Counted from the first letter of the stretch, positions 7,463 through 44,640 are shown. The stretch is 64,000 nt of DNA from Histomonas meleagridis 2922-C6/04-290x (GCA_020184695.1 JAANOX010000258.1:620001-684000), one strand, 5' to 3'. Notes: generated from the letters alone by a model not told the origin. Made by a program: numbers and translations.

Positions 7463-8408
7463 ATGGAATTACACAAGGAAAAACAATATGAAAAAAATCA
7501 AAACATTTACCAATCGATGGTAAATATAATATCAATATTAAATTATAAAAATATTGATAAAACAATTGTTTCAATACTTGACTTTTTTGATGAAAGCTTT
7601 CCTAACTCATTTCATCTTCTTATTTATCAAATAATATTTTCATTTTGCGTTCATCCAAAAACAGAACCATGTTTATACATAAATTATTTGAAAAATTTTG
7701 AAATAAAAGAAGAAGAAGTAATAAAATGTAAATATCAAATTATCGAAGGATTTAAAGAATTTCTTCTTAAAAAATATCCTTCTTCACAAGAATCATATTA
7801 CCTTTTAGGAAAAATGATTGATGATAAATTAATTGATTCAAACTTTCCAAAAAATACATTGTGTTTTGCTCACTTAATGAAAACAGATGAAATTGATAAA
7901 TGCAAAGATTTTATTGGCGCATCACAGTTTTTCGATAATTATGAAAAACTTTCAAAGAATAATTGGGAACTTCATATAAAACATGTTAAAAAAGGACATA
8001 ATCCAAATGAAATTGCGAAAATAATTCGAAATGACGAAATAGATAAACTTCAAGAAATATCATCACAAAATAATTTTGATTTTGATCAAATAATTCCAAG
8101 GTCATACAGCACTTATTTTGGCATCTTTAAATGGTTATACAGAAATAGTTCAATTACTTCTTGAACAAGAAGGAATTGATATTAATGCTAAAGATATTTA
8201 TTTGTTTTATTTATAATTTTTTTAAATAATTTGATATTTTAAAATAATATTTGGAAATAATTTAAATTATTTAGAACAGCACTTATTTGTGCATCTGAAA
8301 AAGGTGAAATAGAAATAGTTAAATTACTTCTCGAACAAAAAGGAATTAATGTTAATGCTAAAAATATTTATTTGCTTTCGTTATGAATATATAAATGTTC
8401 TTATCTGA
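7463..8408 (+). CDS. Locus A: internally deleted DUF3447-like/ankyrin gene with a 17-nt insert array
   Basis: N-terminal part matches loci B-D (GHNPNEIAKIIRNDEIDKLQEISSQ). It jumps at about 8098 to ankyrin repeats TALILASLNGYTEIVQLLLEQEGIDINAKD and TALICASEKGEIEIVKLLLEQKGINVNAKN, separated by 4x(17-nt insert + codon). The 3' end is uncertain and the gene may be non-functional. Confidence 0.6.
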
Positions 8409-18977: not shown

Positions 18978-21117
18978 ATGGAACTCTCGAAATCGTTGCA
19001 GTCAATCATCTTTAATCTCAACGAAGAAAATATCAAATCATCAGTTCAATCAACAATAGAACTATTTACTTACAATAAACAATACACATTCAACCTTCTT
19101 ATTTCTAGGATAATATATACAGCATTTGTTTCTCAAGTAAAAGTCAAATCGCCAATCTTTAAATATTTGGTGATGTTGAATTTACAAGAAGAAAAAACTA
19201 ATAAAAATATAATAAACCTTATTTACATATTTAATCAATACTTACTTCAAATAAAAACACAAGAATCATTATTTCTTCTTCGAAAGATGAACGAGCAAGG
19301 ATTATTCGAAACAAATCTTGTAAAATATAATAAGAAAAATTATGAATTGGTTCTAAATAATGATTTTGCTAACCTGAAGAATATTAATGAAGAAGGACAT
19401 AATCCAAATGAAATTGCGAAAATAATTCGAAATGATGAAATGGATAAACTTCAAGAAATATCATCACAAGAAAACTTTGATTTTAATCAAACAATTGAAC
19501 CATCACTTTATGAAAGATGTTCTTTTATTAATGAAGAAAATGTTACATTAATTGATTATGCAGCATTTTTTGGGTCAGTTAAATGTTTTAAATATTTACT
19601 TATGAATGGTGCAGAAGTAGAAAATACAGGTAAATATGCAGTTGCAGGTGGAAGTTTAGAGATAATTCATTTGTGTGAACAAAATCATTCATCATTTAAA
19701 GATGCATATGAAACAGCAATTAAATTCCACCAAAATGATATCTTTATATATCTTTATGAGAAGAAAAATGATAAAATTATAACAAAATACAATAAACAAA
19801 CACCCAATTTAAATCATAGAAAAGCCGAAAAAGATATTGCATATTTTAAAAGAATTTGTTTGGTATGTGATAATTATATAATTTTTTCATTTTTAGAACA
19901 AGAAACAATGGAAATAACTGAAGGTATTATTGAGGAAATTGCAAGAAATGGAAACACATTTATAATGGAAAATATAATAGATAATCAACAAATTCCAAAT
20001 ACAATTTTATCATGTTCAGTTGAATCAGGAAATATAGAAATAGTAAAATTACTTTTAGATAAAGGAATTGATGTTAATGCAAAAACTATTCATTTGAATA
20101 ATTTGAAATATGTTTTAATAATTTTGGATATGTTTTAATAATTTTTTATATGTTTTAATAATTTGAAATATGTTTTAATAATTTGAAACAGCACTTCATA
20201 TAGCAGTTAGAAATAATAATATAGAAATAGTAAAATTACTTTTAGATAAAGGAATTGATGTTAATGTAAAAAGAATTTAATTTAATAATTTATAATATGT
20301 TCTAATAATTTAGAATATGTTTTAATAATTTGAAATATGTTTTAATATTTTGATATATGTTTTAATAATTTGAAATATGTTATAATAATTTGAAACAGCA
20401 CTTCATATAGCAGTTGGAAATAATAATATAGAAATAGTAAAATTACTTTTAGATAAAGGAATTGATGTTAATGCAAAAAATATTCATTATAATGGTTTGG
20501 AATATGCTTTAATAATTTGAAATATGTTTTAATAATTTTATATATGTTTTAATAATTTGAAACAGCACTTCATATAGCAGTTAGAAATAATAATATAGAA
20601 ATAGTAAAATTACTTTTAGATAAAAAAGAAATTGATGTTAATGCAAAATATATTCATTCGAATAATTTGTAATATTTTTTAATAATTTTATATATGTTTT
20701 AATGATTTGGAATATGTTTTAATAATTTGATGTATGTTTTAATAATTTGAAATATGTTTTAATAATTTTATATATGTTTTAATAATTTGAAATATGTTTT
20801 AAGAATTTGAAACAGCAATTCATATAGCAGTTAGAAATAATAATAAAGAAATAGTAAAATTACTTTTAGATAAAGAAGGAATTGATGTTAATGCAAAAAC
20901 TATTCATTTTAATGGTTTGGAATATGCTTTAATAATTTTATATATGTTTTAAAGATTTGGAATATATTTTAATAATTTGGAATATGTTTTAATAATTTTA
21001 TATATGTATTAATCATTTGAAACAGCAATTCACATAGCAGTTAGAAATAATAATTTAGAAATCGTAAAATTGCTTTTAGATAAAGAAATTAATATTAAAA
21101 CAATCAACTTTATTTAA
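18978..21117 (+). CDS. Locus B: DUF3447-like domain plus ankyrin repeats with five 20-nt-periodic insert arrays
   Basis: Conserved N-terminal domain (LIDYAAFFGSVKCFKYLLMNG). Five TALHIAVRNNNIEIVKLLLDK-type repeats, each preceded by 4-8 17-nt inserts with single codons between them. After excision the frame runs to TAA at 21115-21117. Confidence 0.75.
20088..21018 (+). repeat. Five arrays of the 17-nt unit ATATGTTTTAATAATTT alternating with variable triplets
   Basis: Arrays at 20088-20184 (5 inserts), 20275-20391 (6), 20482-20558 (4), 20652-20808 (8) and 20902-21018 (6). Confidence 0.95.
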
Positions 21118-23791: not shown

Positions 23792-25075
23792 GGTTAGGAT
23801 GCAAAAAGCCCTACATTTTGCGGTTTTTGAACGATAGGAAATTTGAAAGGAAAAAAAATGGCAATAAAAATATTCGACTTTTGATAAGGAGATCAAAGTC
23901 ATGTCAAAAAGTGAATAATGGCAAAATATCTTATTGGGGGGGGGGGTCTGATACACTTCGAAATCATTTTTCTAATAAAAATATTTTAAATTATGATTAG
24001 TTTATTAAGAAATTTCACCAATTATTGCTTTCCAGCATTTTTCAAATGTATTTCCTATATTTCTCTGAAAGCACCATTCATGGATATATGATTCGAGATA
24101 ATTTCTATCTCTAAATCCATTTTTTATGAGGTACCCTTTTATTAGATTCCATGTACCTTCTATTTTTTGAGTATTTGCCTCAGTAATTAAATCTACATAA
24201 TTTTCTGGGTGATTTACTGTTTTGTGTACATAACCTAGATTACTAAGAGTATTATATGCCTTCCATTCATCAGACCAAATTTCTGAATTAGGTCTAACTG
24301 TTGAACAAATAATTGGAATGAGAACTTCTTTCGATCTATTTTCGCAAATCTCAGCAACAACTCTCATTGTTTTACTGTCTATTTCGCCAAAAACCCAAAT
24401 TTCTTCCATTTCCTATGCACTTCCTTTGTTGTATTTAGCACCGAAAAAATGACTTTCATCAATTTCGACTATTCCATCACCAAGTAAATTCTGAGCTATA
24501 TCTTTTCGATATTCTTTTTCTGCAATAGATCGAAAAGTCTGAAACCATGTTAGTACTGATCGTTCACATACACCTGTAATTTTAGATGTAGTTCTTATAT
24601 CAAAACCTTCTACCCAACATGCTAAAATGTGAACAAATCCCCTTAATGAAAGTTTTGATTGTGATACCCATGAATCTAATCTGATTGATTTTGAATTTCT
24701 GCATTTACTTGAGCAGCATCTATATGCAGCACCATCAGGGTAACTTGGTGAGATATAAACTTTCATTAACGATTGACATTTCGAACATATTTGAATTTGG
24801 TGGATATCAGGAATGATTCCCTGCTCAGAGGCCCATTTGATGAAGCTTTTGTAATTTAATTTTAACACTTTCTTAATGGTTTCGAATTGCAATTGCATCA
24901 ATAAAAAAATGATCGACTTTTTGACTACTTTACAAACAAAAAATATGAATGCATTTTTATCGCTAACCGTTATAATAAATCTAATATTTTTTATCCAATA
25001 ACTGGCATCTCTATTTTTCCTCAAATTTCCTATCGTTCAAAAACCGCAAAATGGAGGGCGTTTTGCATCAGAGCC
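23792..25075 (-). mobile_element. Merlin / IS1595-family DNA transposon
   Basis: About 55-bp TIRs (GGTTAGGATGCAAAAAGCCC... / ...GCGTTTTGCATCAGAGCC) flanked by an 8-bp TSD with one mismatch (CGATATAT / CAATATAT). Encodes an ISXO2-type transposase. Confidence 0.9.
24005..24898 (-). pseudogene. ISXO2/IS1595-like DDE transposase with one in-frame stop
   Basis: Zn-ribbon (CSKC...CCSSKC), VEIDES, KYNKG-stop-E-MEEIWVFG, SDEWKAY, HKTVNH, NTQKIEGTW. The two ORF-track pieces are in the same frame. Confidence 0.88.
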
Positions 25076-31347: not shown

Positions 31348-31419
31348 GTCTCCGTAGTCTAATGGTTAGAATAGGAGTTTAACACGCTCTTGACGGCAGT
31401 TCGATCCTGCCCGGAGACA
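31348..31419 (+). tRNA. tRNA-Val(AAC)
   Basis: Acceptor stem GTCTCCG/CGGAGAC, anticodon loop TT-AAC-AC, T-arm GGCAG-TTCGATC-CTGCC, downstream T-run terminator. Confidence 0.92.
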
Positions 31420-31515: not shown

Positions 31516-32520
31516 ATGGAATTTAGGTTAAATGAAGATCTGCAAGACCTTTACCAAAGTAAAACATTAGCAAGCAGTCCATTTAGCGTGCATGCTAGCA
31601 AAACACATAGCCAAATTTCTATTACACGTAAGTGCATTGTAAATCAATGTTTATTTTGGTGTGATGTAGCCCAACGTTTCACAAAAAACATGCACAAATC
31701 TCCTCCAAAACCTGATCGTAATAACTCTAATCAAGTTGACACAATATCAGATTCATCATTCATTGTAGGCGTTATTGGCTGTGGATCGATTGGTTCCAAA
31801 TTTATCCGTAATCTTATCAAACTAAAAATTGTCTCTCCATCACAAATCCGAGTATCATCGCGCACACCTTCTAAAGCTAAACTTCGATGTAATTTAGATG
31901 TTATCTCTTCAAATACAGAAATTGCATCGCAGTGCACTGTCCTTTTTCTCTTTATTCTTCCCTTCCAGTTCCGTCAGATATATCAAGAAATTCGTGAATC
32001 CATTCAAATTAATCATCCATTAATCATTTCAACATTATCCGGGACCACAAAATTATATCTTCAAAGGTCACTTAATACTTCATTTGTTATCACCACTGGC
32101 ATTGATATCTCGGTAATTGAAACTTCTGTTGAAGATGAACATAATTTATTAGAATTTGAAGAAACCGATTTTCTTCATTCCGGAACATATAACAATGCGA
32201 AAGCTATGAAGTTGGTTGATTCAGCGTCATTCGCTGCCGAAAATCTGGTTCGCTGTGGTTTTGATTTTGTGAATTCAATAGTTTACACGCTATGTGAATG
32301 GGCATCAAAAGACCCAAACTTTGAAAGGATTAAGGCAAAGCCAGAAACTTATGAAAGGCTCTGGGAAAAGTCATTTGTTTCATTATCATCAATTTTAACA
32401 GAGGAAAAATTTGATCAAATTGGAAAATGTGAAATAAAGAAAGCATTTATTAGAGCACTTGTACGGAATGAAACCAATGAAAGAAAAGAACTAAGTAGCA
32501 GCTCTTTTCCACAACTATAG
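31516..32520 (+). CDS. NAD(P)-binding oxidoreductase, P5C-reductase/NOXRED1-like
   Basis: Rossmann motif VGVIGCGSIG followed by IRVSSRTP and VLFLFILP. Confidence 0.7.
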   Translation: MEFRLNEDLQDLYQSKTLASSPFSVHASKTHSQISITRKCIVNQCLFWCDVAQRFTKNMHKSPPKPDRNNSNQVDTISDSSFIVGVIGCGSIGSKFIRNLIKLKIVSPSQIRVSSRTPSKAKLRCNLDVISSNTEIASQCTVLFLFILPFQFRQIYQEIRESIQINHPLIISTLSGTTKLYLQRSLNTSFVITTGIDISVIETSVEDEHNLLEFEETDFLHSGTYNNAKAMKLVDSASFAAENLVRCGFDFVNSIVYTLCEWASKDPNFERIKAKPETYERLWEKSFVSLSSILTEEKFDQIGKCEIKKAFIRALVRNETNERKELSSSSFPQL

Positions 32521-32818
32521 ATAATTGAGTAATGAAAATCAAATATTTATATAAATATAAAGTGGGAAAAAATCTGTAGTATCGGTTTCACTTTTTGAAC
32601 GCGATTCTATTCAAACCGATCGAAAAGTGCCGCTTATTTTTTACAACTGTAAAAACAGTTTAGTGTAAAGACTGAATATCGAATTTTTTAACGATTTTAT
32701 CAATTTATTTATTCACTTTTTATGATAGTTTTTTTTTAAAGAAATATTAAAATTTTATTATTGATGTTTAGCTTTGATGGAACTGATCAGTTCATATGTA
32801 AAAAGATTATTTTATCTT

Positions 32819-35800
32819 TTACTCTTCATCATTTGTATTTCTCTTCATTAATTTGCATGGGTAAATACCATGACCCGCTCCACAATCACAAAAACAAGGC
32901 GAAGGATTTTTCGCTTCAGATATTTCATGACCTTTATGACATGTTTTGGCGCATTCTTCGCATATACTAAAACCTGATTGCATTGAACAAGTTTTACATT
33001 GGTAATAAGTTCTGTGCATTAAATATTTGTATTTAGTTTGTTCAAATGTGCAATGTCCTGGAATGCATTCGAGAATAGGTCTATTTCTTTGGATTCTATA
33101 ATGGTTTGCTTGATCATTATATAACGTTTTTATTTCTTTGTTATCTTTATCATCAATTTCAATACCGTTTTGTTGAATAAGTATTTTTATAACTTCATTA
33201 TTTTCATTTTTTATTGCATGTGCAATTGCTGTGATAAATTATTAAAATAAGTTCCAAAAATTACTTGAAAACATTAAAATATTAAAATAAAATTTAAATA
33301 AAATAATTTTATATCTTTTGCATTAATATCAATTCCTTTTTGTTCAAGTAATAATTTAACTATATCGACATGATTATTCTTAGCTGATAAAATAAGTGCT
33401 GTATAAAATTATTTGAATAAATTCCAAATATTATTTAAAATTATCAAATTATTATAACAAAAATAAAATGAATAATAGAAAGTTTAGCATTAATATCAAC
33501 TTTTTCTTGCTCAAGAATAAATTTAACTATATCAGTCTTCCCATTTAAAGATGAGAATATAAGGGAAATATTAAATTATTTAAATTATTTCTAAATAATA
33601 TAATAAAATTAAAAATTATAACAATAAAAATTATTTCGAATATTTTCATCAATATCTTCTTGTTCAAGAAGTAATTTTACAATTTCAACATAACCATTTA
33701 AAGAAGCAAATAAAACTGCTGATTCAAATAATAAAAACAATTTCTAAATAAAAAATTAAAATTTTAAATCATTAAGACAAATACTAAACAAGTTAAATAA
33801 ATATTAACATTTGTATTAATTCCTTCTTTTTCAAAAAGTAATTTAACTATATCAATATAACCTTTCTCAGATGCTATTATTAATGCTGATCTATAAATTA
33901 TAAATAAATTCCAAATATTTTCATAAAATTTTAAACTATTTAAATAAATTTCAAATAAAAAATTTAAATATCTGTGGCATGAATATTAATTCCATTTTGT
34001 TCAAGAAGTAATTTTACTGTTTCTGAATGTCCGTTTTCTGCTGCAAATATAAGTGGTGTTCTAAATATTTTAAATAATTTCCAAATATTATTTTGGAGTT
34101 TTAAAATCTTTATCATTTATATTAGTTTCTTCTTTTTTTAGAATCAATTTAACAATTTCGTTACGGCCATTAGCACATGCAATCATAAGAATTGAAAACA
34201 ATAATTTTAATAAACTCCAAATATTATTTTTTAACAAAATATTATTTTGATAAACTCTAAATCAAATAAATTATCATCTTTCTCATTAATATTAATTCCT
34301 TGATGATTAATAAGTAATTTAATGATTTCTTCATTCCCAAATTTAGATGCTAAAATAAGTGATGTTTCAAATATTTAAAGTAATTTCCAAATATTCACTT
34401 TAAATATAAAATTAATAAAATAAAGACTATATAAAATATATAAAAATTTTTATCATTTATATTAATATTTTCGTTTTCAAGTAGTAATTTTACTATTTTA
34501 GCATTGTTCTTTTCAATTGCAAACATAAGAACTGAAATAAAAAATTTTAATAAATTCTAAGTTTTATTTTGATATATTAAATAGTTAAAACTAACATTAA
34601 ATAAAACATATAAATATCTTTAGTATTAACATCAATTCCTTTGTGTTGAAGAAGCAATTTTACAATATCTATATAACCTTTTTGGATTGCTATAATAAGA
34701 GGTGTACCAAATTATTTGAGTAAATTTTATATATTTTTAAATAGTAAATTACTCAAATAAACATTAAATGTTACAAATAAATACTTTTCGCATTAACGTT
34801 AACATCTTTTTGTTCAAGAATAACTTTAGCTATATCAGGATGATCATTTTTTAATGCATAAGTAAGTGCTGATTTAAATAATTTAAATAATTTCCAAACA
34901 TTTTTTTAAAATATGAAATTATTAAAATAAATATTAAATATAACAAATAAACCAAAATATTAACATCGATTTCTTTCATCTCAAGAAGTAATTTAACAAT
35001 TTCTATACAATCGTTTTTGAATGCATATATAAGTGCTGTATTAAACAATTTAAATAATCTCCAAATATTATCTTAAAATATAAAATTAACAAAAATTTCT
35101 CTATATAAAACAAATTTATATCTTTAGCATTAATATCAATTCCTTCTTGCTTAAGAAGTAATTTAACTATATCTATATAACCTTTTTCTGATGCTATAAT
35201 AAGTGCTGTCTTAAATAATTTAAATAATTTCCAAATATTATTTTAAAATTTGAAATTATTAAAATAAATTTCATCGTTAACATTGATATTAATTTCAACA
35301 TCATCAATAAGTAAATTACATATTTCATTATGACATTTATTTAATGCTGCTAAAACAGATGAGTTAAAAACATTAAATAAATACCAAATATTATGATCAA
35401 AAACCAATTTCATCATTTTCTTTTCTTTCGAAGAATGATTTCAGTATATCTTTTTGACGATTTTCTAATTCCTCAATTAATTTCTTTTTAAACATTTTAA
35501 ATAAATCTCAAATCTCAAAACAAAACATTAAATTATTAAAACAAATATTAAATATTCAAAATTTAATATCTTTTTCATTTAAATCATTTTTTTCTTTTTC
35601 AAAAACATATTTAACAAGTTCAATGTTTCCTGAAATTGTTGAAAACAATAAAATTTTTTCTGGGATTTGATTGTTTTGCATAAAATCTTTCACAAGATAT
35701 AAGTTACCAATTTTTGCTGATTCATTAATAATAGATTCATCAATTGGCATACCTTCTTCGATTAAAAATGAAAGAATTTCATAGTTCGCAAAGTGAAGAC

Positions 35801-36821
35801 AAACATTTCCAAAGTTTTTAATTCTTGTTAATTTTTTCTCATGATTTTCTTTTTCTTTAATCGATTTTATTTTGTTTAATTTTTCTCTATTTATTTCATA
35901 AAGATATTTAAAGATATCATTTCGATGGAATTTAATTGCTGCTTCATATCCACCTTTAAATGATGAATGATTTTGTTCACATAAATGAATGATTTCAATG
36001 TTTCCACCTGCAACTGCATATTTACCTGTATTTTCTGCTTTTGCGCCATTCATAAGTAAATATTTAAAACATTTAACTGACCCAAAAAATGCTGCATAAT
36101 CAATTAATGTAACATTACTTTGATTAACAAATGAATATCTTTCATAAAGTGATGGTTTAATTGCCTTATTAAAATCAAAGTTTTCTTGTGATGATATTTC
36201 TTGAAGTTTTTCGATTTCATCATTTCGAATTATTTTCGCAATTTCTTTTGGATTAACTCCTTCTTCGATTAATTTTTTATGAAGTTCAAAATTATTCTTT
36301 GAAAGTTCATCATAATTTTTTAAGAATTTTCTTGTTAATGAACCACTTTGCAAAATGTTTTTTCGATGTGCAAAATAATTTGAATCTAATTTTTTAATAA
36401 TTTTTGTATCAATTAAATTTAATTTAATGAATTTCTCAATAATATAATTTAATTCTTGACATGCGCTTTGTGATTTATACATATTTACCAAATATTTACT
36501 AAAAACTTCAATAATGCTTGAATTACTTTGATTTTTTTCTTCTTTAGTTTGAATAGATTGTATATAATCTATATATAAATCAACATCATTTTTTTGTAAT
36601 AAACATGCAACATAAATTAAATCAGTTAATGAAAGATTAAATGTATGTGGAAATTTTGAATCAAATAAACTCATTATTTGTTCAACTGATTGTTCAAAAT
36701 TTTCTTTAATCAAATTAAATATTATGCCTTCAAGCGTACGTAATAAATGAACGCTCTTAAATTTACCATAATTGGCATTCTCAATTTTGTTTAAATTTTG
36801 ATTTGAACTTAGATCTTCCAT
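32819..36821 (-). CDS. Locus C: DUF3447-like domain, about 15 ankyrin repeats and a C-terminal UBR-type zinc finger; loops interrupted by 17-nt inserts
   Basis: ORF 35556-36821 supplies the N-terminus. The 15 loop arrays between 33236 and 35567 parse as inserts plus single codons. The last repeat reads in frame into YYQCKTC...ICEECAKTCHKGH...CFCDCG. Confidence 0.8.
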
Positions 36822-37216
36822 TAAATTTTGAAAGTGATATGACCAAACGACTTAACCGTAATCGATTCACTGCAAATCAACGTGCGGCAAAACAATTTTG
36901 AGAAGCATGAACCGTCGTCATAAAATAAATGTTTTTGGTGTTAAAACATTGGAATTTATTACATAATAATGAGTACCATGTACGCAATTTATGGAATTTG
37001 GCAGGAGATATCATAGTCCTTTCACAACAATATTATATTATTCTCACATATGGCTTCTTATGCGATGGCAAAATCGGAGCACCCCCAAATTGTAGCGGTT
37101 TTTTGAATGCTTTTCAACCAACGACGATCAATTTCCAACACAAAAATGCAAACCGTTGTTTATGCGCCATTTTACTGAAAATCATTGAAACCGTTAATAT
37201 ACGTTAACTCGAAGAC

Positions 37217-37831
37217 ATGACACAACTTCCACCGAAATCATCCAAAAAAACAGCATCCGGTCTTTCCCCTGAGACTGATGCATATTTATCAAAACTCATG
37301 AGGAAAAATGGAATGTCTAAAAGAAAACAAAATGATTTACTTGGACAAATACAAACAGAAGGTGTTCTTCCTATGCAACCAAAACCAAAAATCTATAAGC
37401 CCGTTACAAAACCAAAGCCAGAACAAAAAGTTTTTACAATGGCTCAAGTTGGTAAGCGTCCTTTAACAAAGAAAGAATCAACAATCATAGAAGAAACTAA
37501 CTTTTATGAACCTGCTCGTCCACCTGCTGTTCCCATTGGTCCTTCGTCTGAAGAAAGGAAAACAGAACTTGCCACCAAAATGTGGGGTGTTGATGAAGAA
37601 GCAATCAAACAAAAACAAAAAAAGGAAAATTCACAAACAAGCTATTCTAAATTTACGATGGATGATCAAATCCTTGAGGAAATCAAGGATAGAACTAATT
37701 GGCTTGAAGAAATGCATGAAATTGGTGTGCATGAGCATGATGCAGAAACTCTCAGGCAGATCGATCAACGAGTAGAAGAACTCAAAAAGAGGCGAAAAGC
37801 AAAGAAAACAATATATGACGATTCTGACTAA
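37217..37831 (+). CDS. UPF0193/EVG1-like protein
   Basis: LMRKNGMSKRKQNDLL..I..EGVLP and EEIKDRTNWLEEMHEIG...RQIDQRVEEL match the family pattern as I recall it. Confidence 0.65.
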   Translation: MTQLPPKSSKKTASGLSPETDAYLSKLMRKNGMSKRKQNDLLGQIQTEGVLPMQPKPKIYKPVTKPKPEQKVFTMAQVGKRPLTKKESTIIEETNFYEPARPPAVPIGPSSEERKTELATKMWGVDEEAIKQKQKKENSQTSYSKFTMDDQILEEIKDRTNWLEEMHEIGVHEHDAETLRQIDQRVEELKKRRKAKKTIYDDSD

Positions 37832-38378
37832 TAATATGTTAATTAATTCATAGAAATGTATTTATTATAAAAATCAAATTAAAACAATTCACTCACTTAA
37901 AGTTTTTAAAAATAGTTCACTTACTTAAAGTTATTGATAAGAATAACTTGAACACACAATTGAAAATTCATGATGAAAAGCATTGGAAAGTACGATTAAA
38001 TATCTCACAAAACTGTTATTTTGAAAATGATTTAATCGTTCATTTTAATTAAAATTCTTTTTCACACAGGTTGAACATGTATATAAAGTTCGACCCAAAA
38101 TGTTGGGACACCACCTGTTCATTATTGAGAGGATTCCTTTCAATCTGTCCCAAGTTCGTACTTTAATATTTTTCATTTGGAGATCTCTCAATTCCCCACT
38201 TTTTCATAATTTATCTGTTCGTTGCCATTTTTTCTTGCTCAAGTGTTTTCTTGCCATTTAGCTCTGTGTTAAAAAAAATTTCTTTTTCTAGAAAAAGATT
38301 TTACTGAGTTTATAATATATTGAAAAATAGATCGAATTCGACATAATTCGTTCATCGCAATTTGAATTTCACACAGAT

Positions 38379-40325
38379 TTATCCGACTGTGTTCGCATTG
38401 GCTTCGCTTTGCTCTGTCTCGTCTTCAGTTTGCGCATTTGCGTTTTCTTCTTCCGGATGTTCCGTTTCGTTTATATTTTGTGTATTTGAATTTTCAAACT
38501 CGTTAACTGTTTGCGTTAACTCATTTGAATGTTCCGATTCATTTTCGTTTTGTTGCTGTGTTTCGCTTCCGTCCTGCGCACTCACAGCTCTGTCCTGCGC
38601 AATGGCTTCATCACGTTCGTCCTCATTTCCGTTTTGCGTGTTTTCGCTTGGAGTTGTTCCGCTTTGCTCATTGACATTTTCTTCGTTTTGAACATTTGTA
38701 TTTTCGCTTTGAGTTACATTACTTTGATCAATTTGTACATTAACATTTTCTTCGTTTTGTACATTTGCATTTTCACTTTGAGTTACATTACTTTGATCAA
38801 TTTGTACATTAACATTTTCTTCGTTTTGAACATTTGCATTTTCGCTTTGAGTTACATTACTTTGATCAATTTGTACATTAACATTTTCTTCGTTTTGAAC
38901 ATTTGCATTTTCGCTTTGAGTTACATTACTTTGATCAATTTGTACATTAACATTTTCTTCGTTTTGAATATTTGCATTTTCACTTTGAGTTACATTACTT
39001 TGATCATTTTGTTCATTTACATTTTCTTCGTTTTGTATATTTGCATTTTCACTTTGAGTTACATTACTTTGATCATTTTGTTCATTTACATTTTCTTCGT
39101 TTTGCGCGTTTGCATTTATATTTTCATTTTGTGCACTTAAAGTTCCGCTTTGTGCATTTGCATTTTCGTGTTCCAAAACTTCTTCTTCCTCTTCGACTTC
39201 TTCTTCCACGTATTCGTATTCATATTCATAATCCTTTTCGTTATTGTTGTTATTACTATTGCTTTTTATCTTCTTCTTTTTGTTCACCGGCACAATTGTA
39301 CTTGACTCAAGTTCGTCTTCCTCCTCAGCATGGCGAATACGGCTGTCGAAGTCGCTTCCCAAATCGGCTGAGTTTCCCTCGTTTTTCTTTGACTTAAACA
39401 TGTCATTGAATGACGAAAAATGGAAATCCGATGAGTGCAAACGGAGGTATTTAACTTCGGGGAGTTGTGTGCATGGTATTCCAAGTTTGTCAAGAGTAAA
39501 TTGTATGCACAAACGTATCCAACTTTTAGCGCGTGTGCCATTGTGTCCTTTGGTCAGCGGCATTATGAATTTTTCGTCACTTTTACACGCAGTATATAAT
39601 TCGATCGCATGTTGGAAGGGTATAAACTCATCATCTTCGGCGTGACCGAATATAACTGGAGTGGTCATGCTCTGGACTGAAACTAATGGTGAAACATCAT
39701 CAAGATTGAAATTGGCAATCTTGATGATCTTTTGTTTAAGTACCCATATAACTAATCTGACAAAGGCTTTCGGAAAATTCATCGATGAGGCAATGGCTCT
39801 ACACATGTCGGGTATGGAAGTAAATGAGGAGTCACATATTATACCAGCAACATATGGCGACTTAACTAAAAGTGATGTGGCTGCCCCCATGGATCGTCCC
39901 CAAATAACAAATTTATTGATGTTAAACATGCGAAAAAGAGCACTGAATAAAAATTCGACATCTTCCTTCTCAAAATATCCTAATGAAATGTACTCGCCAC
40001 CGCTTCGCCCACACCCTGCAAAGTCAAAACAAAAGACAAATATCCCATAATCACAAAAATTTGGTACAAGAAATTGTCCTTCAAGTTGACAGGAAGAATT
40101 TCCATGAAGATAACAGAGGCAAGAGCCACCACTCATTGGATTGGAATCTATGGAATGATATAACGATCCAACAATAACTTGATTGCGTGGATTAACAAAA
40201 GATAATGGTTGGCGTATATATTTTTTGTCGGCACATTCAAGAACTAGTGGCATTTTTTCTAAATTGTAGTCTTTTCGTGGAGGTCGAATGATTGCATCAA
40301 CCCCTTTTTTGAGTAAGCTCGACAT
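38379..40325 (-). CDS. Alpha/beta-hydrolase with an acidic Asn/Glu/Gln repeat tail
   Basis: AIIRPPR, YLHGNSS, FDFAGCGRSGGEYISLG, WGRSMGAA (nucleophile Ser), HAEDDEFI, GHN. Start set at MSSLLKK. Confidence 0.88.
   Translation of the reverse strand: MSSLLKKGVDAIIRPPRKDYNLEKMPLVLECADKKYIRQPLSFVNPRNQVIVGSLYHSIDSNPMSGGSCLCYLHGNSSCQLEGQFLVPNFCDYGIFVFCFDFAGCGRSGGEYISLGYFEKEDVEFLFSALFRMFNINKFVIWGRSMGAATSLLVKSPYVAGIICDSSFTSIPDMCRAIASSMNFPKAFVRLVIWVLKQKIIKIANFNLDDVSPLVSVQSMTTPVIFGHAEDDEFIPFQHAIELYTACKSDEKFIMPLTKGHNGTRAKSWIRLCIQFTLDKLGIPCTQLPEVKYLRLHSSDFHFSSFNDMFKSKKNEGNSADLGSDFDSRIRHAEEEDELESSTIVPVNKKKKIKSNSNNNNNEKDYEYEYEYVEEEVEEEEEVLEHENANAQSGTLSAQNENINANAQNEENVNEQNDQSNVTQSENANIQNEENVNEQNDQSNVTQSENANIQNEENVNVQIDQSNVTQSENANVQNEENVNVQIDQSNVTQSENANVQNEENVNVQIDQSNVTQSENANVQNEENVNVQIDQSNVTQSENTNVQNEENVNEQSGTTPSENTQNGNEDERDEAIAQDRAVSAQDGSETQQQNENESEHSNELTQTVNEFENSNTQNINETEHPEEENANAQTEDETEQSEANANTVG
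38690..39105 (-). repeat. 69-nt (23-aa) coding tandem repeat, about 6 copies
   Basis: ENANVQNEENVNVQIDQSNVTQS units. Confidence 0.9.
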
Positions 40326-40506
40326 TGCCGTACTTAGCCCCCAATTATTTAAATAAACGGTTTCGCATTTGCACATATTATTCAAAATTGAATCATCCAC
40401 AAAGAAAATTCTATCGTTCGGTTACATTTTTTTATCAACTTTTCTAAACAATTTTTTGATCATGTTCTCCATCAAGACAAAACAATATACGACAAAAATA
40501 AAGATA

Positions 40507-41298
40507 TTACGTAAGTTTACAAAATGATAAGGCAAATTCATCTAAAGCTGCGAATGTTTCTATATTATTCACTTTTGAAAGATGTTGAGCAGAATTCCGG
40601 TGATCCGTACCATCATGATAAGAAACACCGCATATCTCACAATAACCATAATTTCCAGGTCCAACCTGAAAATTGTGACGATTATTTTGAGCTTGAGTTG
40701 CGTTGTGCGGTCGCCCCTTCACATCTAAGTTCGTTGGCGGTTGCACAAAAGGAGAAAGTAAGTAATCTTTTGAATTTGATGGAATCAAATATAACTTCGG
40801 ATAATCATTCATTACCAAAAAGTTTGGTCTAGCACTATGATTTAAATCTGCAAGGACAATCTTTGGACCTTCGTATGATTTTTCGGATATTTGAAGTCTC
40901 TTTGGTTTTACAAAAGCCCAAGGAATCTGTTGAGCTAATATAATTCTTGGCGCTATTCTTGTCCCTTTGGCGAGTTCTGTGATGAACTGTGATTTAATAG
41001 CTTCTGTTTTTGTTGAATCTGTTATTATTACTTCTGGCTGTGGAAATTCATTTTTTAAAATCTTGGCACCCGCGACGCAAAGCATTGATTCTACGAGATT
41101 TTTTTGAGCAAGGTTTTCTAGAAGTACAACAACATTGAGACCGCTGAAAATCTTCGGATGGAGAATGGTTGAATTCCAATTATCTTCAATTACTTTTTTA
41201 TTATTGGCTGTAAGTTTTTTATGGTTTGTATGTATTAAAGCAAAGTCAGAAGGAGAAATTTTCCGAGACCTATCTACTGCTGATACATAAATATTCAT
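40507..41298 (-). CDS. Dbf4/ASK-like protein (Cdc7 regulatory subunit)
   Basis: C-terminal zinc finger GYCEICGVSYHDGTDHRNSAQH, a motif-M-like RPNFLVMNDYPKLY and a BRCT-like N-terminus. Confidence 0.7.
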   Translation of the reverse strand: MNIYVSAVDRSRKISPSDFALIHTNHKKLTANNKKVIEDNWNSTILHPKIFSGLNVVVLLENLAQKNLVESMLCVAGAKILKNEFPQPEVIITDSTKTEAIKSQFITELAKGTRIAPRIILAQQIPWAFVKPKRLQISEKSYEGPKIVLADLNHSARPNFLVMNDYPKLYLIPSNSKDYLLSPFVQPPTNLDVKGRPHNATQAQNNRHNFQVGPGNYGYCEICGVSYHDGTDHRNSAQHLSKVNNIETFAALDEFALSFCKLT

Positions 41299-41638
41299 TC
41301 CTTCAGGCCAGAAAATGATTTCATTTCACACCCACTTTTCCCCCGGGTAAAATTGAATGGAAATCCCCGGGTCTTTTGACGGTTATTTTAATAATTTAAA
41401 CGGCATGCTTAAACGGGTTCAAATTGCATAAACTGTTTTTATTTTATGGCTTCCTATATTTTCCCCCTTAAGGTGTTATTTGATATCAAATAATTTCAGT
41501 GATTTATAAAGGGTATGAATAAATGCATTAAACTATATAATTTTTTTGTTACTAAATTAAATGATTTAACCATTATTTCTTCGTTTCAATGAGGAAAAAT
41601 TATAAAAACTTATAATATTTCTCTAATAAAAATTTTAT

Positions 41639-42154
41639 TCATGCTTTTCGCCCTGGAGAAGTGCTTTCAATTAATGTGATATAAAAGTACATAATAGTCC
41701 ATATAATAGTAAAGAATGTGAACCTTTTGGTTGCCTCAAAGAGGAGGTATGTTCCAAGAAGTGTGAGGAAACAACCTTTATACTGTGCATGACCGATATC
41801 AAATGGAAATCCTTGAATAGGAGGAGAATTGTCAAGGCCAAGTTCCCAGCCATAGTATGCGCGCACTTTACCGAGACGATTATAAACAATATAATTAAGG
41901 TATTGACCGATTGCAATGCAAACAACACTTATATAAATATACTTAAATGTAAACTTACCTTGGAAACCATATGCTGCATATAACACCATACAGATTGTCT
42001 TCATAATAGATGATAATAAGACAAGTTGATTTTGAGTCATAAAGCGTTTAAATGTTTGGGGGAATTTGTACGCAATTGAATAAAGAATATATGGCGTAAC
42101 AAGCGTTATGAATAAGATTAGATCAAAGATGTTAACTGTAATTATTATTGGCAT
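41639..42154 (-). CDS. Phospholipid N-methyltransferase (PEMT family)
   Basis: Multi-TM protein with GQYLNYIVYNRLGKVRAYYG and GFPFDIGHAQYKG. Confidence 0.8.
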   Translation of the reverse strand: MPIIITVNIFDLILFITLVTPYILYSIAYKFPQTFKRFMTQNQLVLLSSIMKTICMVLYAAYGFQGKFTFKYIYISVVCIAIGQYLNYIVYNRLGKVRAYYGWELGLDNSPPIQGFPFDIGHAQYKGCFLTLLGTYLLFEATKRFTFFTIIWTIMYFYITLIESTSPGRKA

Positions 42155-42207
42155 CTAATAATTAAAAGTTTCCGAAATTTTAACGGACTTTGCCCCCCCC
42201 CCCATTT

Positions 42208-44640
42208 TCATCCATGCTGAAATGGGGAAGAAAATGTTGTTACTAGTTTTCCCTCATTCGGAATAACTATTACATTTAAGTAGTACCAATCAAATGTATA
42301 ATAAAAATTATAATAACCAACCATGGGTATATTAAAAATCATTGAGTAGAAAATAGAATATTGAATGGAATTATGTGATGAATTAGTTCCTAATTGGTTT
42401 TGTAAATTAACATTCGTAAATCGCTTTTTTTGATTTTGTTTTGTAAATGATTTGTCAGTTTGTGTTACTTTATCAATTTTTGTATAATGCTTATCTTTTA
42501 ATAATTTCATAATTTCTGTGTTTCCTTCTTTTAACGAAAGCATAAATGCTGTATTAAATGAATAAGAAAAATTCCAAATTTTCTTTTGGGATATCATACT
42601 AACAAAATAAATATTAAGCAAATCACGAAAACATTTTTTATGTTAATATCAGTATCGTTTTGTTTAAGAAGTAATTTTACTATTTCACTGTGGCCTTTTT
42701 TAGTTGCTTTCATGAATGCTGTTTCAAGACAACTTAATAAATTCCGAATTACGTAATAAGATCCAAAATATAATTAAGAATCTAAAAATGAAAAAATCAA
42801 ATATCTTTAATATTAACATTAATATTGTTTTGCTTAAGAAGTATTCTAACGATTTCAATTCGACAATTTTCGGATGCTTCAATAAGTACAGTTTGAAATA
42901 ATCAAGATAAATTCCAAATATTTTTATAAAATATAAAATAATTAATATAAATTCTAACTTAAATGTATGAATATCCCGAATATTAACATCAATATCTTCT
43001 TTTGCAAGAAGTAATTTAACAATCTCTATATTACACTTTTTAGATGCACACATAAGTGCTGTTTGAAACAATATGAATATTTTCCAAAATTAAAATTGAA
43101 ACTAAAAATTTTTATAGTAAAATTTCAATAAATTAAATAAACATTTTTAGTATTAACATTAATTTTCTTATCTGCAAGAAGTGTTTTACAAATCTCGATA
43201 GCGTTATTTCCAGCTGCAATAATGAGTGCTGTATAAAATAAATCTTATAAATTCCAAATGAAATTTTGAAAAATAATGTTAATAATATAAACATTATTAA
43301 ATATAAACAAATAGTTTTTGCATTAATATCGATATCTTCACAGGTTAAAAGCAGTTTTACAATTTCATGATTTTTATTACTAGATGCATTTGTAAGAGCA
43401 GTCCAAAATAATTTAAATAAACTCCAAATATATTAATGAAATATTATTTTATTGATTTAAACATTGAATATTATATTTATACATCTTTTGCATTAACATC
43501 AATTTCCTTTTGTTCTAGAAGATATTTAACTAAATCAATATTTTCTGAATAAGATGAAGCAATTAAAATATCTTTTGGAATTTGGTTTTCTTCAATAATT
43601 TGTTTAACAAGAAAGAAATTACCAATTGTTGCTGCTTCAATGATTATAGATTCATTAATTTTCATTCCTTCATTAATTAAAAAAGATAATATTTTATAAT
43701 TATGATATAAAACACAATTTTTTCCTAAATCACTTAAATCTTTAATTTTTATAATTTCATTTTCATAAAGATAATGAAAAATTTCATTTCGATGAAACAT
43801 TATTGCTGTTTCATATGCATATTCAAATGTTGAATGATTTTGTTCACAAATATGAATTATTTCTAAGTTTCCACTTGCAACTGCATATTTCCCTGTGTTC
43901 CTTAAGTTAGAACCATTTAACATTAAGTATTTAAAACATTTTATTGCCTCAAAAAATGCTGCATAATCAATTAATGTAACATCGTTTTTGTTAATGAATG
44001 AGCATTTTTCGTAAAGAGATGGTTCGATTGTTTGATTGAAATTAAAATTTGTTTGTGATGAAATTTGTTGTAACTTACTTACATCATCTTGTTGAATTGC
44101 TTTTGCTATATCTTCTGGATTAACACCATTTTGTATTAACATTTTATGTAGTTTCCAATTATCTTTTGAAAGTTTTTCAAAGTTTTGTAAAAATTGTTTT
44201 GCAAAATTATCAGTGGACTTTATAGCATTAAAACATGAATTTAATTCTTCTTTTGTCTTAAAATGTGCAAAATATAAAGATTTATTATGTTCAATAAATT
44301 TAACATCAACAAATTTTTGTTCAATTAAATTTTGGATCAAAAAATTGGATTCTTGTGAATGATTATTTGGAATAATATAATTAAGGAAAAAGTCAAATAT
44401 TTTATTAATTCCATTGATTTCCTTTTCTTCAATTTCTTTCAAATAATTAAAATATATGTTATGACCCTTTCTATTACAAGAAAAAGCAGAATAAATCAAT
44501 TGACAAATTAAAAAATTAAATGAAAATTGATAATCAGGATAATACAAATCAATTGTTGATTTAACCATTTCATTAATATTATTTGAATCCAATTCGAAAA
44601 TGATCTGTTCCATATCCTGTAAAAACTTAAGTTGCTTCAT
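42208..44640 (-). CDS. Locus D: DUF3447-like domain plus ankyrin repeats; six loops each split by four exact 17-nt inserts
   Basis: ORF 43477-44640 supplies the N-terminus. Arrays at 42556-43482 give KDNNGWTAL, KTNYGYTAL, KNKLGQTAL, RDRYGQTVL, KDLWGETAF and KNNDGNTAF after excision, then read to the stop at 42208. Confidence 0.82.

Follow-up and report, generated by a model that had tools for sequence, protein, structure and literature searches.

In a 64,000 nt stretch of the genome of Histomonas meleagridis (assembly GCA_020184695.1; hereafter the window, with all coordinates counted from its start), four genes for DUF3447-ankyrin proteins, designated loci A, B, C, and D, are interrupted inside their ankyrin loops by short A/T-rich inserts, nearly every one of which is 17 nt long. 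It is highly probable that these 17-nt pieces are true intervening sequences that are present in the DNA, are transcribed, and are cut precisely from the RNA, so that the single codons lying between them are joined; this estimate covers excision at the RNA level and does not extend to the choice of machinery. The normal ankyrin loop (KD-x-x-G-x-TAL) results from joining these flanking single codons. The inserts had been noticed in an earlier reading of the same DNA, the original prediction, and that observation is confirmed here by 111 inserts at the four loci and by RNA-like contigs from which they are missing.

Inserts were parsed by counting backward from the T/S-A-L codon in a 20-nt register, that is, 17 nt plus one codon, followed by a dynamic-programming parse. 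The register fits nearly every loop, and the parse across the four loci returned 110 17-nt inserts and one 18-nt insert, most of them a single codon apart. Once the inserts are subtracted, each loop translates as an ordinary ankyrin turn, such as KD-N-N-G-W-TAL or KD-R-Y-G-Q-TVL; at locus D, the loops become KD-N-N-G-W-TAL and similar. The span 33236-43482 holds the two insert genes of the minus strand, loci C and D, and the interval separating these two is occupied by four ordinary genes without interruptions (UPF0193, alpha/beta hydrolase, zf-DBF, and PEMT). Both loci open with a long open reading frame (ORF) matching DUF3447 and Ank in Pfam (35556-36821 for locus C, 43477-44640 for locus D), downstream of which ankyrin-repeat pieces of ~95 nt alternate with AT-rich spacers of ~80 nt. 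Subtracting its 54 inserts turns locus C into one ORF that encodes DUF3447, 15 loops, and a UBR-type zinc finger. Some locus C loops are short of one or two inserts, exactly, with the corresponding codons kept; the codons of positions 1 and 2 of loop C10 are contiguous, and two inserts are thus precisely absent there. The loops of locus B hold 4, 5, 6, or 8 insert copies, and since each copy comes with one codon, these loops expand by 20-nt modules.

Removal at the RNA level was followed at locus C by comparing assembled contigs of public runs against the interval 32800-36900, the RNA-like runs (X4-X7) coming from one 2023 study. The evidence was drawn from loose ends and collinear pieces, the joint table being swamped by paralogue cross-matches at 90% likeness. 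Sampled 31-mers of the interval were present at a share of 0.91 in DNA-like runs versus 0.52-0.55 in X4-X7, the share expected for a fully spliced message being 0.61-0.64. Because their depth over the intergenic segment 36773-36900 is near zero (~0-9, versus 504 in DNA), the RNA-like runs behave as RNA. Contigs of the DNA run X1 are collinear with the genome with the inserts included, as in the gap-free match over 34069-34626, and the insert-containing form is the only one found in DNA contigs among the pieces listed. In the RNA-like contigs from three samples (X4-X6), the exon blocks match locus C with 0 differences, versus the 25-35% by which paralogues differ, and what is missing from these contigs is 68 nt (34708/34782), 204 nt (34198/34615), and 103 nt (35366/35563), corresponding to 4, 12, and 6 predicted inserts. 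Exact loss was thereby seen for 22 of the 54 locus C inserts, and the frame was restored every time. The loose-end consensus of the RNA-like runs reads ...AAAGAT up to the cut and xAT TAT GGA AAA/AAT ACA GCA CTT beyond it; the cuts therefore fall at codon boundaries, in register 0, and a shift by one base in either direction (-1/+1) is excluded.

The inserts of loci A, C, and D follow consensuses that depend on their place in the loop, aTTTATtTaTTTTATTT, aTTTATTTTAATAATTT, ATTTtAAaATAATATTT, and AtTTATTTAAATTATTT for positions 1-4, which essentially reproduces the four position-specific consensuses described originally. Sequence identity is 66.7% within and 56.7% between these classes, a difference reached by 0 of 1000 label permutations, and leave-one-out assignment recovered the right class for 58 of 81 inserts. 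When pooled, the inserts share the motif R-T-T-T-A ... A-T-T-T, with A at position 14 in 78% and T at each of the last three positions in ~90%. The first base is not fixed, with A, G, T, and C at 69%, 18%, 8%, and 5% in a seed set of 51 inserts and at 69, 20, 7, and 2 in a set of 98 sequences. A common core recurs in three independent sets: ATTT.TTT..AT.ATTT in loci A, C, and D, ATATGTTTTAATAATTT in locus B, and.TT.A.TTTT.AT.TTT in a second parabasalid that is described below. The position-specific consensus need not reflect a mechanistic rule and is best explained by shared descent and homogenisation of whole repeat units, because locus B uses its one insert type at every position. The near-palindromic character attributed to class 4 proved weak, with 12 of 17 positions matching the reverse complement (hand count) in a sequence made up of A and T only. 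A mutual-information scan of 98 sequences, covering inserts and flanks, returned class and position effects only and no base-pair covariation, although A/U-only sequence gives such a scan little power. Direct repeats of 2-5 nt in the flanks equal the permutation expectation, in agreement with the predicted lack of target-site duplications; with flank repeats at the permutation mean and with the inserts kept in DNA contigs, the pieces resemble neither transposon-derived introns (introners) nor the internal eliminated sequences (IES) of ciliates.

The same arrangement extends beyond the window. A Histomonas paralogue (L006) has the four-insert layout, with most of its inserts starting in GT, and the 4x17 layout was also present in ENA metagenome contigs (L001-L003) that are 65-78% identical in nucleotide sequence and indistinguishable from Histomonas paralogues. 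By our own parse of L006, two probable 18-nt inserts, GTTTGTTTTTGTTCTTTT and GTTTTTTATTGTTTGTTT, lie at ~7690-7770, where insert length seems to vary via T runs.

A protein-guided scan of JGI metagenome contigs recovered 80 loci (L009-L088; Ga0209639, Ga0074193, and JGI24731J21663) from a eukaryote with a GC content of 32%, on contigs of up to 335 kb. Its pyruvate phosphate dikinase (PPDK) is 65-66% identical to the enzymes of Tritrichomonas foetus and Trichomonas vaginalis and 57% to the best bacterial one, which places this lineage as a parabasalid close to neither Tritrichomonas nor Trichomonas. Its ankyrin repeats are spaced by 99 nt (n=143) or by 116 nt, that is, 99+17 (n=196, 175 unique); spacings of 115 nt (n=3), 117 nt (n=0), and 133 nt (n=5) are rare or absent. 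Most of the repeats carry a 17-mer, one each, which precedes the T of TPLH by two codons and occupies the place of class 3 in Histomonas; its consensus is GTTGAGTTTTTATATTT. Once it is taken out, 175 of 175 units are free of stops and a long ORF is regained, for example in L035. Shifts of 0 and -1 were not separated by loop-residue likelihood; where a codon ends in T, both yield an identical product. A few units with +19 or +16 nt were also seen, and these may be broken. As judged from sequence, the recurrence of the 17-nt rule in a distant parabasalid shows a system that is probably old and mechanistically constrained.

Several points weigh against excision as we describe it. The "RNA" label of X4-X6 is a guess, contigs and not reads were compared, and the RNA and DNA runs stem from different studies and thus possibly from different strains. 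One insert, at 33573-33589, is kept in contigs of two RNA-like runs at a depth similar to that of the spliced contigs, and its retention introduces a stop in the ankyrin frame. The contigs that retain it stop at the edge of the next insert, and the neighbouring insert appears removed; either removal is ordered and this is an intermediate, or the retained piece is a poor substrate. The motif itself carries little information: at a look-alike threshold set to the 10th percentile of true insert scores, which keeps 90% of the true inserts, 1066 17-mers of the window score at or above it, and 99 of these are inserts. The RNA contigs keep ten sense-strand look-alikes that lie in the N-terminal coding portion of locus C, with scores reaching 9.6 bits versus a true-insert median of 10.5. 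Because such look-alikes are left in place, the sequence of the insert alone cannot specify removal, and the true sites must bear a mark beyond the 17-mer, which could be the phasing of the tandem array, the conservation of the ankyrin flanks, or a factor acting in trans.

Explanations that do without RNA excision were weighed against the same observations. The genes could be decaying pseudogenes and the insert-free RNA could come from other gene copies or from an insert-free strain, or, as a variant, the inserts could be eliminated at the DNA level. The separate origins of the RNA and DNA runs, the absence of NCBI genes at loci C and D, and the one insert retained in RNA would all suit such an account, which we nonetheless judge to be improbable: the exon blocks of the RNA contigs are free of differences over several repeats where paralogues diverge by 25-35%, and decay would hold neither 110 of 111 inserts at 17 nt nor one frame over 54 sites, nor would it account for the same rule in a distant parabasalid. 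Since the RNA contigs retain the insert at 33573-33589, the strain from which the RNA came carries that insert in its genome, and the DNA contigs listed, all of them insert-containing, speak against another copy and against DNA elimination. An artefact of complementary DNA (cDNA) synthesis or assembly, in the form of reverse-transcriptase template switching between short direct repeats, is suggested by the ATTT with which inserts both start and end. It is disfavoured, however, because the removed piece includes both ATTT copies, such that a switch would delete 13 nt and not 17, and because the flanks share no repeats above the chance level; removal at 22 sites in three runs with the frame always restored makes it hardly credible.

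Translation over a message that keeps its inserts, by bypassing of the T4 gene 60 type or by -1 frameshifting, has in its favour the U UUA AAU and U UUA AAA heptamers that stand in the correct frame in class-4 inserts (read by eye), and the first three inserts of some loops, which are open in frame. Both routes are excluded as the main one by the RNA contigs, most of which lack the inserts, and the earlier argument against classical ribosome hopping is upheld by this loss at locus C. Moreover, 26 of the 111 inserts carry an in-frame stop, and four hops per loop over 15 loops would leave almost no product. As had been predicted, the landing triplet, the last of the insert, is mostly TTT (93 of 110) while the upstream codon varies; it equals the take-off triplet before the insert in 3 of 110 cases. 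In T4 gene 60 and the 'byps' of Magnusiomyces mitochondria, the skipped segment remains part of the mRNA, and bypassing requires that take-off and landing codons match; the Histomonas inserts resemble them as short non-coding pieces within ORFs that lack splice signals, and differ in being absent from RNA and in their rarely matching codons. We consider such a translational route extremely improbable. Among specific candidates, -1 frameshifting at UUUAAAU was ruled out by the RNA contigs together with the in-frame stops. One conventional intron per loop was also rejected, as an 84-nt GT...AG span in one loop gives, by hand reading, a stop in the ankyrin frame.

For the machinery that would excise the inserts from RNA, the spliceosome or a derivative of it, operating at the minimal length limit, is the most likely candidate, with roughly an even chance of being the right one. 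Under this reading, each 5′ cut would be matched to its proper 3′ cut by the constant spacing of 17 nt, and skipping of the 3-nt exons would be avoided. The splice-site requirement would be loosened to R-U-U-U on the 5′ side and A-U-U-U on the 3′ side; a possible branch site is the A conserved at position 14, which lies four bases from the 3′ end. Tandem and gene duplication of the repeat units probably carried the inserts along, and 20-nt insert-plus-codon units probably duplicated within loops; this joint spread would explain why the inserts are confined to ankyrin loops.

The original prediction regarded length as far better conserved than sequence, which is right for 110 of 111 inserts but not absolute, the 18-mer being backed by the length count in RNA. 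It went on to derive a ruler from the fixed length and, from the ruler, a mechanism other than spliceosomal splicing; that step does not follow, because a tiny fixed length is typical of minimal spliceosomal introns, which measure 16-17 nt in mikrocytids, 15-16 nt in Stentor and other heterotrich ciliates, and 18-21 nt in the chlorarachniophyte nucleomorph (PMC10245619); the type B introns of Trichomonas, at 23-25 nt, are likewise narrow in size (PMC12316389). Like the minimal introns of mikrocytids, ciliates, and the nucleomorph, the Histomonas inserts are removed at the RNA level, span a length range of one or two nucleotides near the lower limit, are A/T-rich, and are numerous; unlike these, whose sequences are highly conserved (PMC10245619), they lack a terminal AG in every case and vary in their first base. 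Minimal introns are, in addition, neither in tandem with 3-nt exons nor restricted to one repeat family. As far as is known, the minimal introns of mikrocytids, ciliates, and nucleomorphs keep GT-AG ends.

What stands of the earlier argument against spliceosomal splicing is its appeal to the insert ends; these, and a missing branch motif, weigh against the spliceosome. An AG at the 3′ end was found in 0 of 110 inserts, as predicted, and GT..AG as parsed likewise in 0 of 110, with AT..AC ends possible in 1 of 110; sliding the boundaries, whether product-preserving or uniform (-8 to +8), gives GT-AG or AT-AC in at most 2 cases, so that this claim also holds. The first insert base can be A, G, T, or C. 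The GT/GC-AG ends and the ACTAA(C) branch fused to the 3′ site (PMC12316389) that mark U2-type introns in their parabasalid form are both lacking: the parabasalid branch core CTAAC occurs in 0 of 111 inserts and CTAA in 1 of 111. U12 motifs (5′ ATATCC, branch TCCTTAAC) cannot be present because the inserts contain 3% C overall. Inserts of the second lineage behave alike, with GT-AG possible in 0 of 175, an AG end possible in 3 of 175, CTAAC in 0 of 175, and CTAA in 6 of 175. To our knowledge, 3-nt exons between adjacent introns are unprecedented for the spliceosome.

The introns of Trichomonas vaginalis point the same way, all 63 validated ones being GT-AG with ACTAA, one per gene (PMC12316389). 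The type B introns of T. vaginalis and T. stableri are 23-25 nt long, have GT-AG ends and a (T)CTAA branch motif merged with the 3′ site, occur once or at most twice per gene, and number 24 in the T. vaginalis genome (PMC12316389). They come from the same phylum as the Histomonas inserts and share with them a very short length, a T-rich interior, and, for some, residence in repeat-protein genes; the Histomonas inserts differ in having neither AG nor CTAAC and in their number, with as many as 54 in one gene and 4-8 in a loop.

The rival candidate is a dedicated non-spliceosomal endonuclease and RNA ligase; a measuring nuclease/ligase and guide-directed deletion were already named as possible processes in the original prediction. 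Such a pair, in the style of tRNA splicing or of IRE1/RtcB, would measure a fixed 17 nt from one cut to the other, with the ankyrin-loop context or a guide RNA directing it to its sites. It is consistent with ends that are neither GT-AG nor AT-AC, with the missing branch motif and the variable first base, and with the strict length, which in the second lineage is reflected in +17 spacings (n=196) versus +16 (n=3); the insufficiency of the insert sequence, which calls for context or a trans-acting guide, agrees with it as well, and single-codon exons would fit a small enzyme more easily than a spliceosome. XBP1 (26 nt) and HAC1 are spliced in the cytoplasm by IRE1 with RtcB or tRNA ligase, and archaeal introns are defined by a bulge-helix-bulge; these are likewise short, frame-changing pieces without GT-AG ends, removed by an endonuclease and a ligase with fixed cut geometry. 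They differ in needing a defined stem-loop or bulge-helix-bulge and in occurring once per transcript and not in tandem arrays. Among the Histomonas inserts, no conserved pairing was found: the mutual-information scan detected no covariation, no conserved helix or bulge is apparent, and there is no space for exon-exon helices between neighbouring inserts. Neither an enzyme nor a guide RNA emerged as a candidate, and the inserts' preference for R-U at the 5′ end and their conserved A close to the 3′ end resemble relics of a splice site and a branch site. We regard this enzyme pair as less likely than the spliceosome, at about one chance in three, with the remainder going to other explanations. 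A separate splicing system conserved across parabasalids, in which a length-measuring RNA endonuclease and a ligase, possibly guided, would let protein loops be encoded, lengthened, or shortened by single codons (20-nt modules, as in locus B), is put forward tentatively.

NCBI's annotation of GCA_020184695.1 leaves 32520-37217 (locus C) and 42155-44640 (locus D) without any gene, and a paralogue annotated elsewhere (P0013, on L006) ends inside its first insert. With loci uncalled and a paralogue truncated, a large family of surface-interaction proteins of this poultry pathogen is mostly invisible in proteome databases. The Histomonas genome paper describes introns as scarce, with at most one per gene (PMC8529796). 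A full-text literature search returned no description of ankyrin-gene introns in Histomonas, parabasalids, or Dientamoeba, nor of 17-nt introns, and the inserts look like an ultra-short kind of intron that is without a published description and is missed by current gene annotation. If so, they would be introns of the least possible size whose ends are neither GT-AG nor AT-AC, arranged in tandem with single-codon exons, a layout that no described splicing system we know of handles. Either the spliceosome would be far more permissive than thought, or parabasalids would own another system of RNA excision and ligation; were the non-spliceosomal alternative true, the inserts would be a fifth kind of intron. 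The 20-nt modules of insert plus codon would also offer a simple route to loop-length variation in a repeat family that forms binding surfaces.

Table 1. Coordinates of the insert-bearing loci, of individual inserts, and of other features in the window.
Feature	Coordinates	Strand	Basis
Locus A, one loop with four 17-nt inserts	8196-8272	+	register and parse
Locus B, five loops with 4-8 near-identical inserts (ATATGTTTTAATAATTT), one codon after each	20088-21018	+	register and parse
Locus C, DUF3447-ankyrin-UBR-box gene	32819-36821	-	Pfam DUF3447 and Ank on first ORF; parse
Locus C, 15 loops with 54 inserts (53 x 17 nt, 1 x 18 nt), mostly 4 per loop	33236-35567	-	parse; RNA-like contigs
Predicted class-4 insert AATAATTTAAATAATTT, retained in RNA-like contigs	33573-33589	-	contigs of X4 and X6, collinear on 33483-33592
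Loop C10, inserts 3 and 4 only	34063-34099	-	parse
Sole 18-nt insert, ATTAAATTTTGAATATTT	35550-35567	-	103 nt absent from RNA contigs (35366 to 35563) = 5x17+18
Locus D, DUF3447-ankyrin gene, 24 inserts in 6 loops	42208-44640	-	Pfam; parse
Locus D loops, 6 x 4 inserts of 17 nt	42556-43482	-	register and parse
Gene for 204-aa protein, identical in GCA_020184695.1 and GCA_020186115.1	37217-37831		
tRNA gene	31348-31419	+	Rfam RF00005, 52.5 bits

The 204-aa protein of Table 1 supports the assignment of the window to Histomonas meleagridis, since GCA_020186115.1 includes a protein named for this species. An Rfam scan of the window returned the tRNA as its only match and no small nuclear RNA (snRNA), and exact-protein look-ups with the first ORF of locus C and with the PEMT ORF returned no record. 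One candidate for a canonical parabasalid intron, GTATGT...ACTAAC...CAG, was noted at 24539-24571 on the minus strand inside an IS1595-like transposase frame, and is the only plausible one in the window; because its 33 nt are a multiple of three and open in frame, the frame is uninformative about it. In Tritrichomonas musculus (L005, 10970-11130 and 15275-15440), tandem DUF3447 genes end, after DITNKK, in an AT-rich spacer of ~130 nt, which is followed by one ankyrin repeat and then by an ORF with BspA-like leucine-rich repeats (LRR) and a UBR box, for which the annotation has a gene of its own. A 1-nt indel distinguishes the two spacers, and no 17-nt parse of them was convincing. The alpha/beta-hydrolase gene of the window (38379-40400, minus strand) carries tandem units of ~20 aa, QSNVTQSENANVQNEENVNVQID, in its C-terminal half, at 38690-39100.

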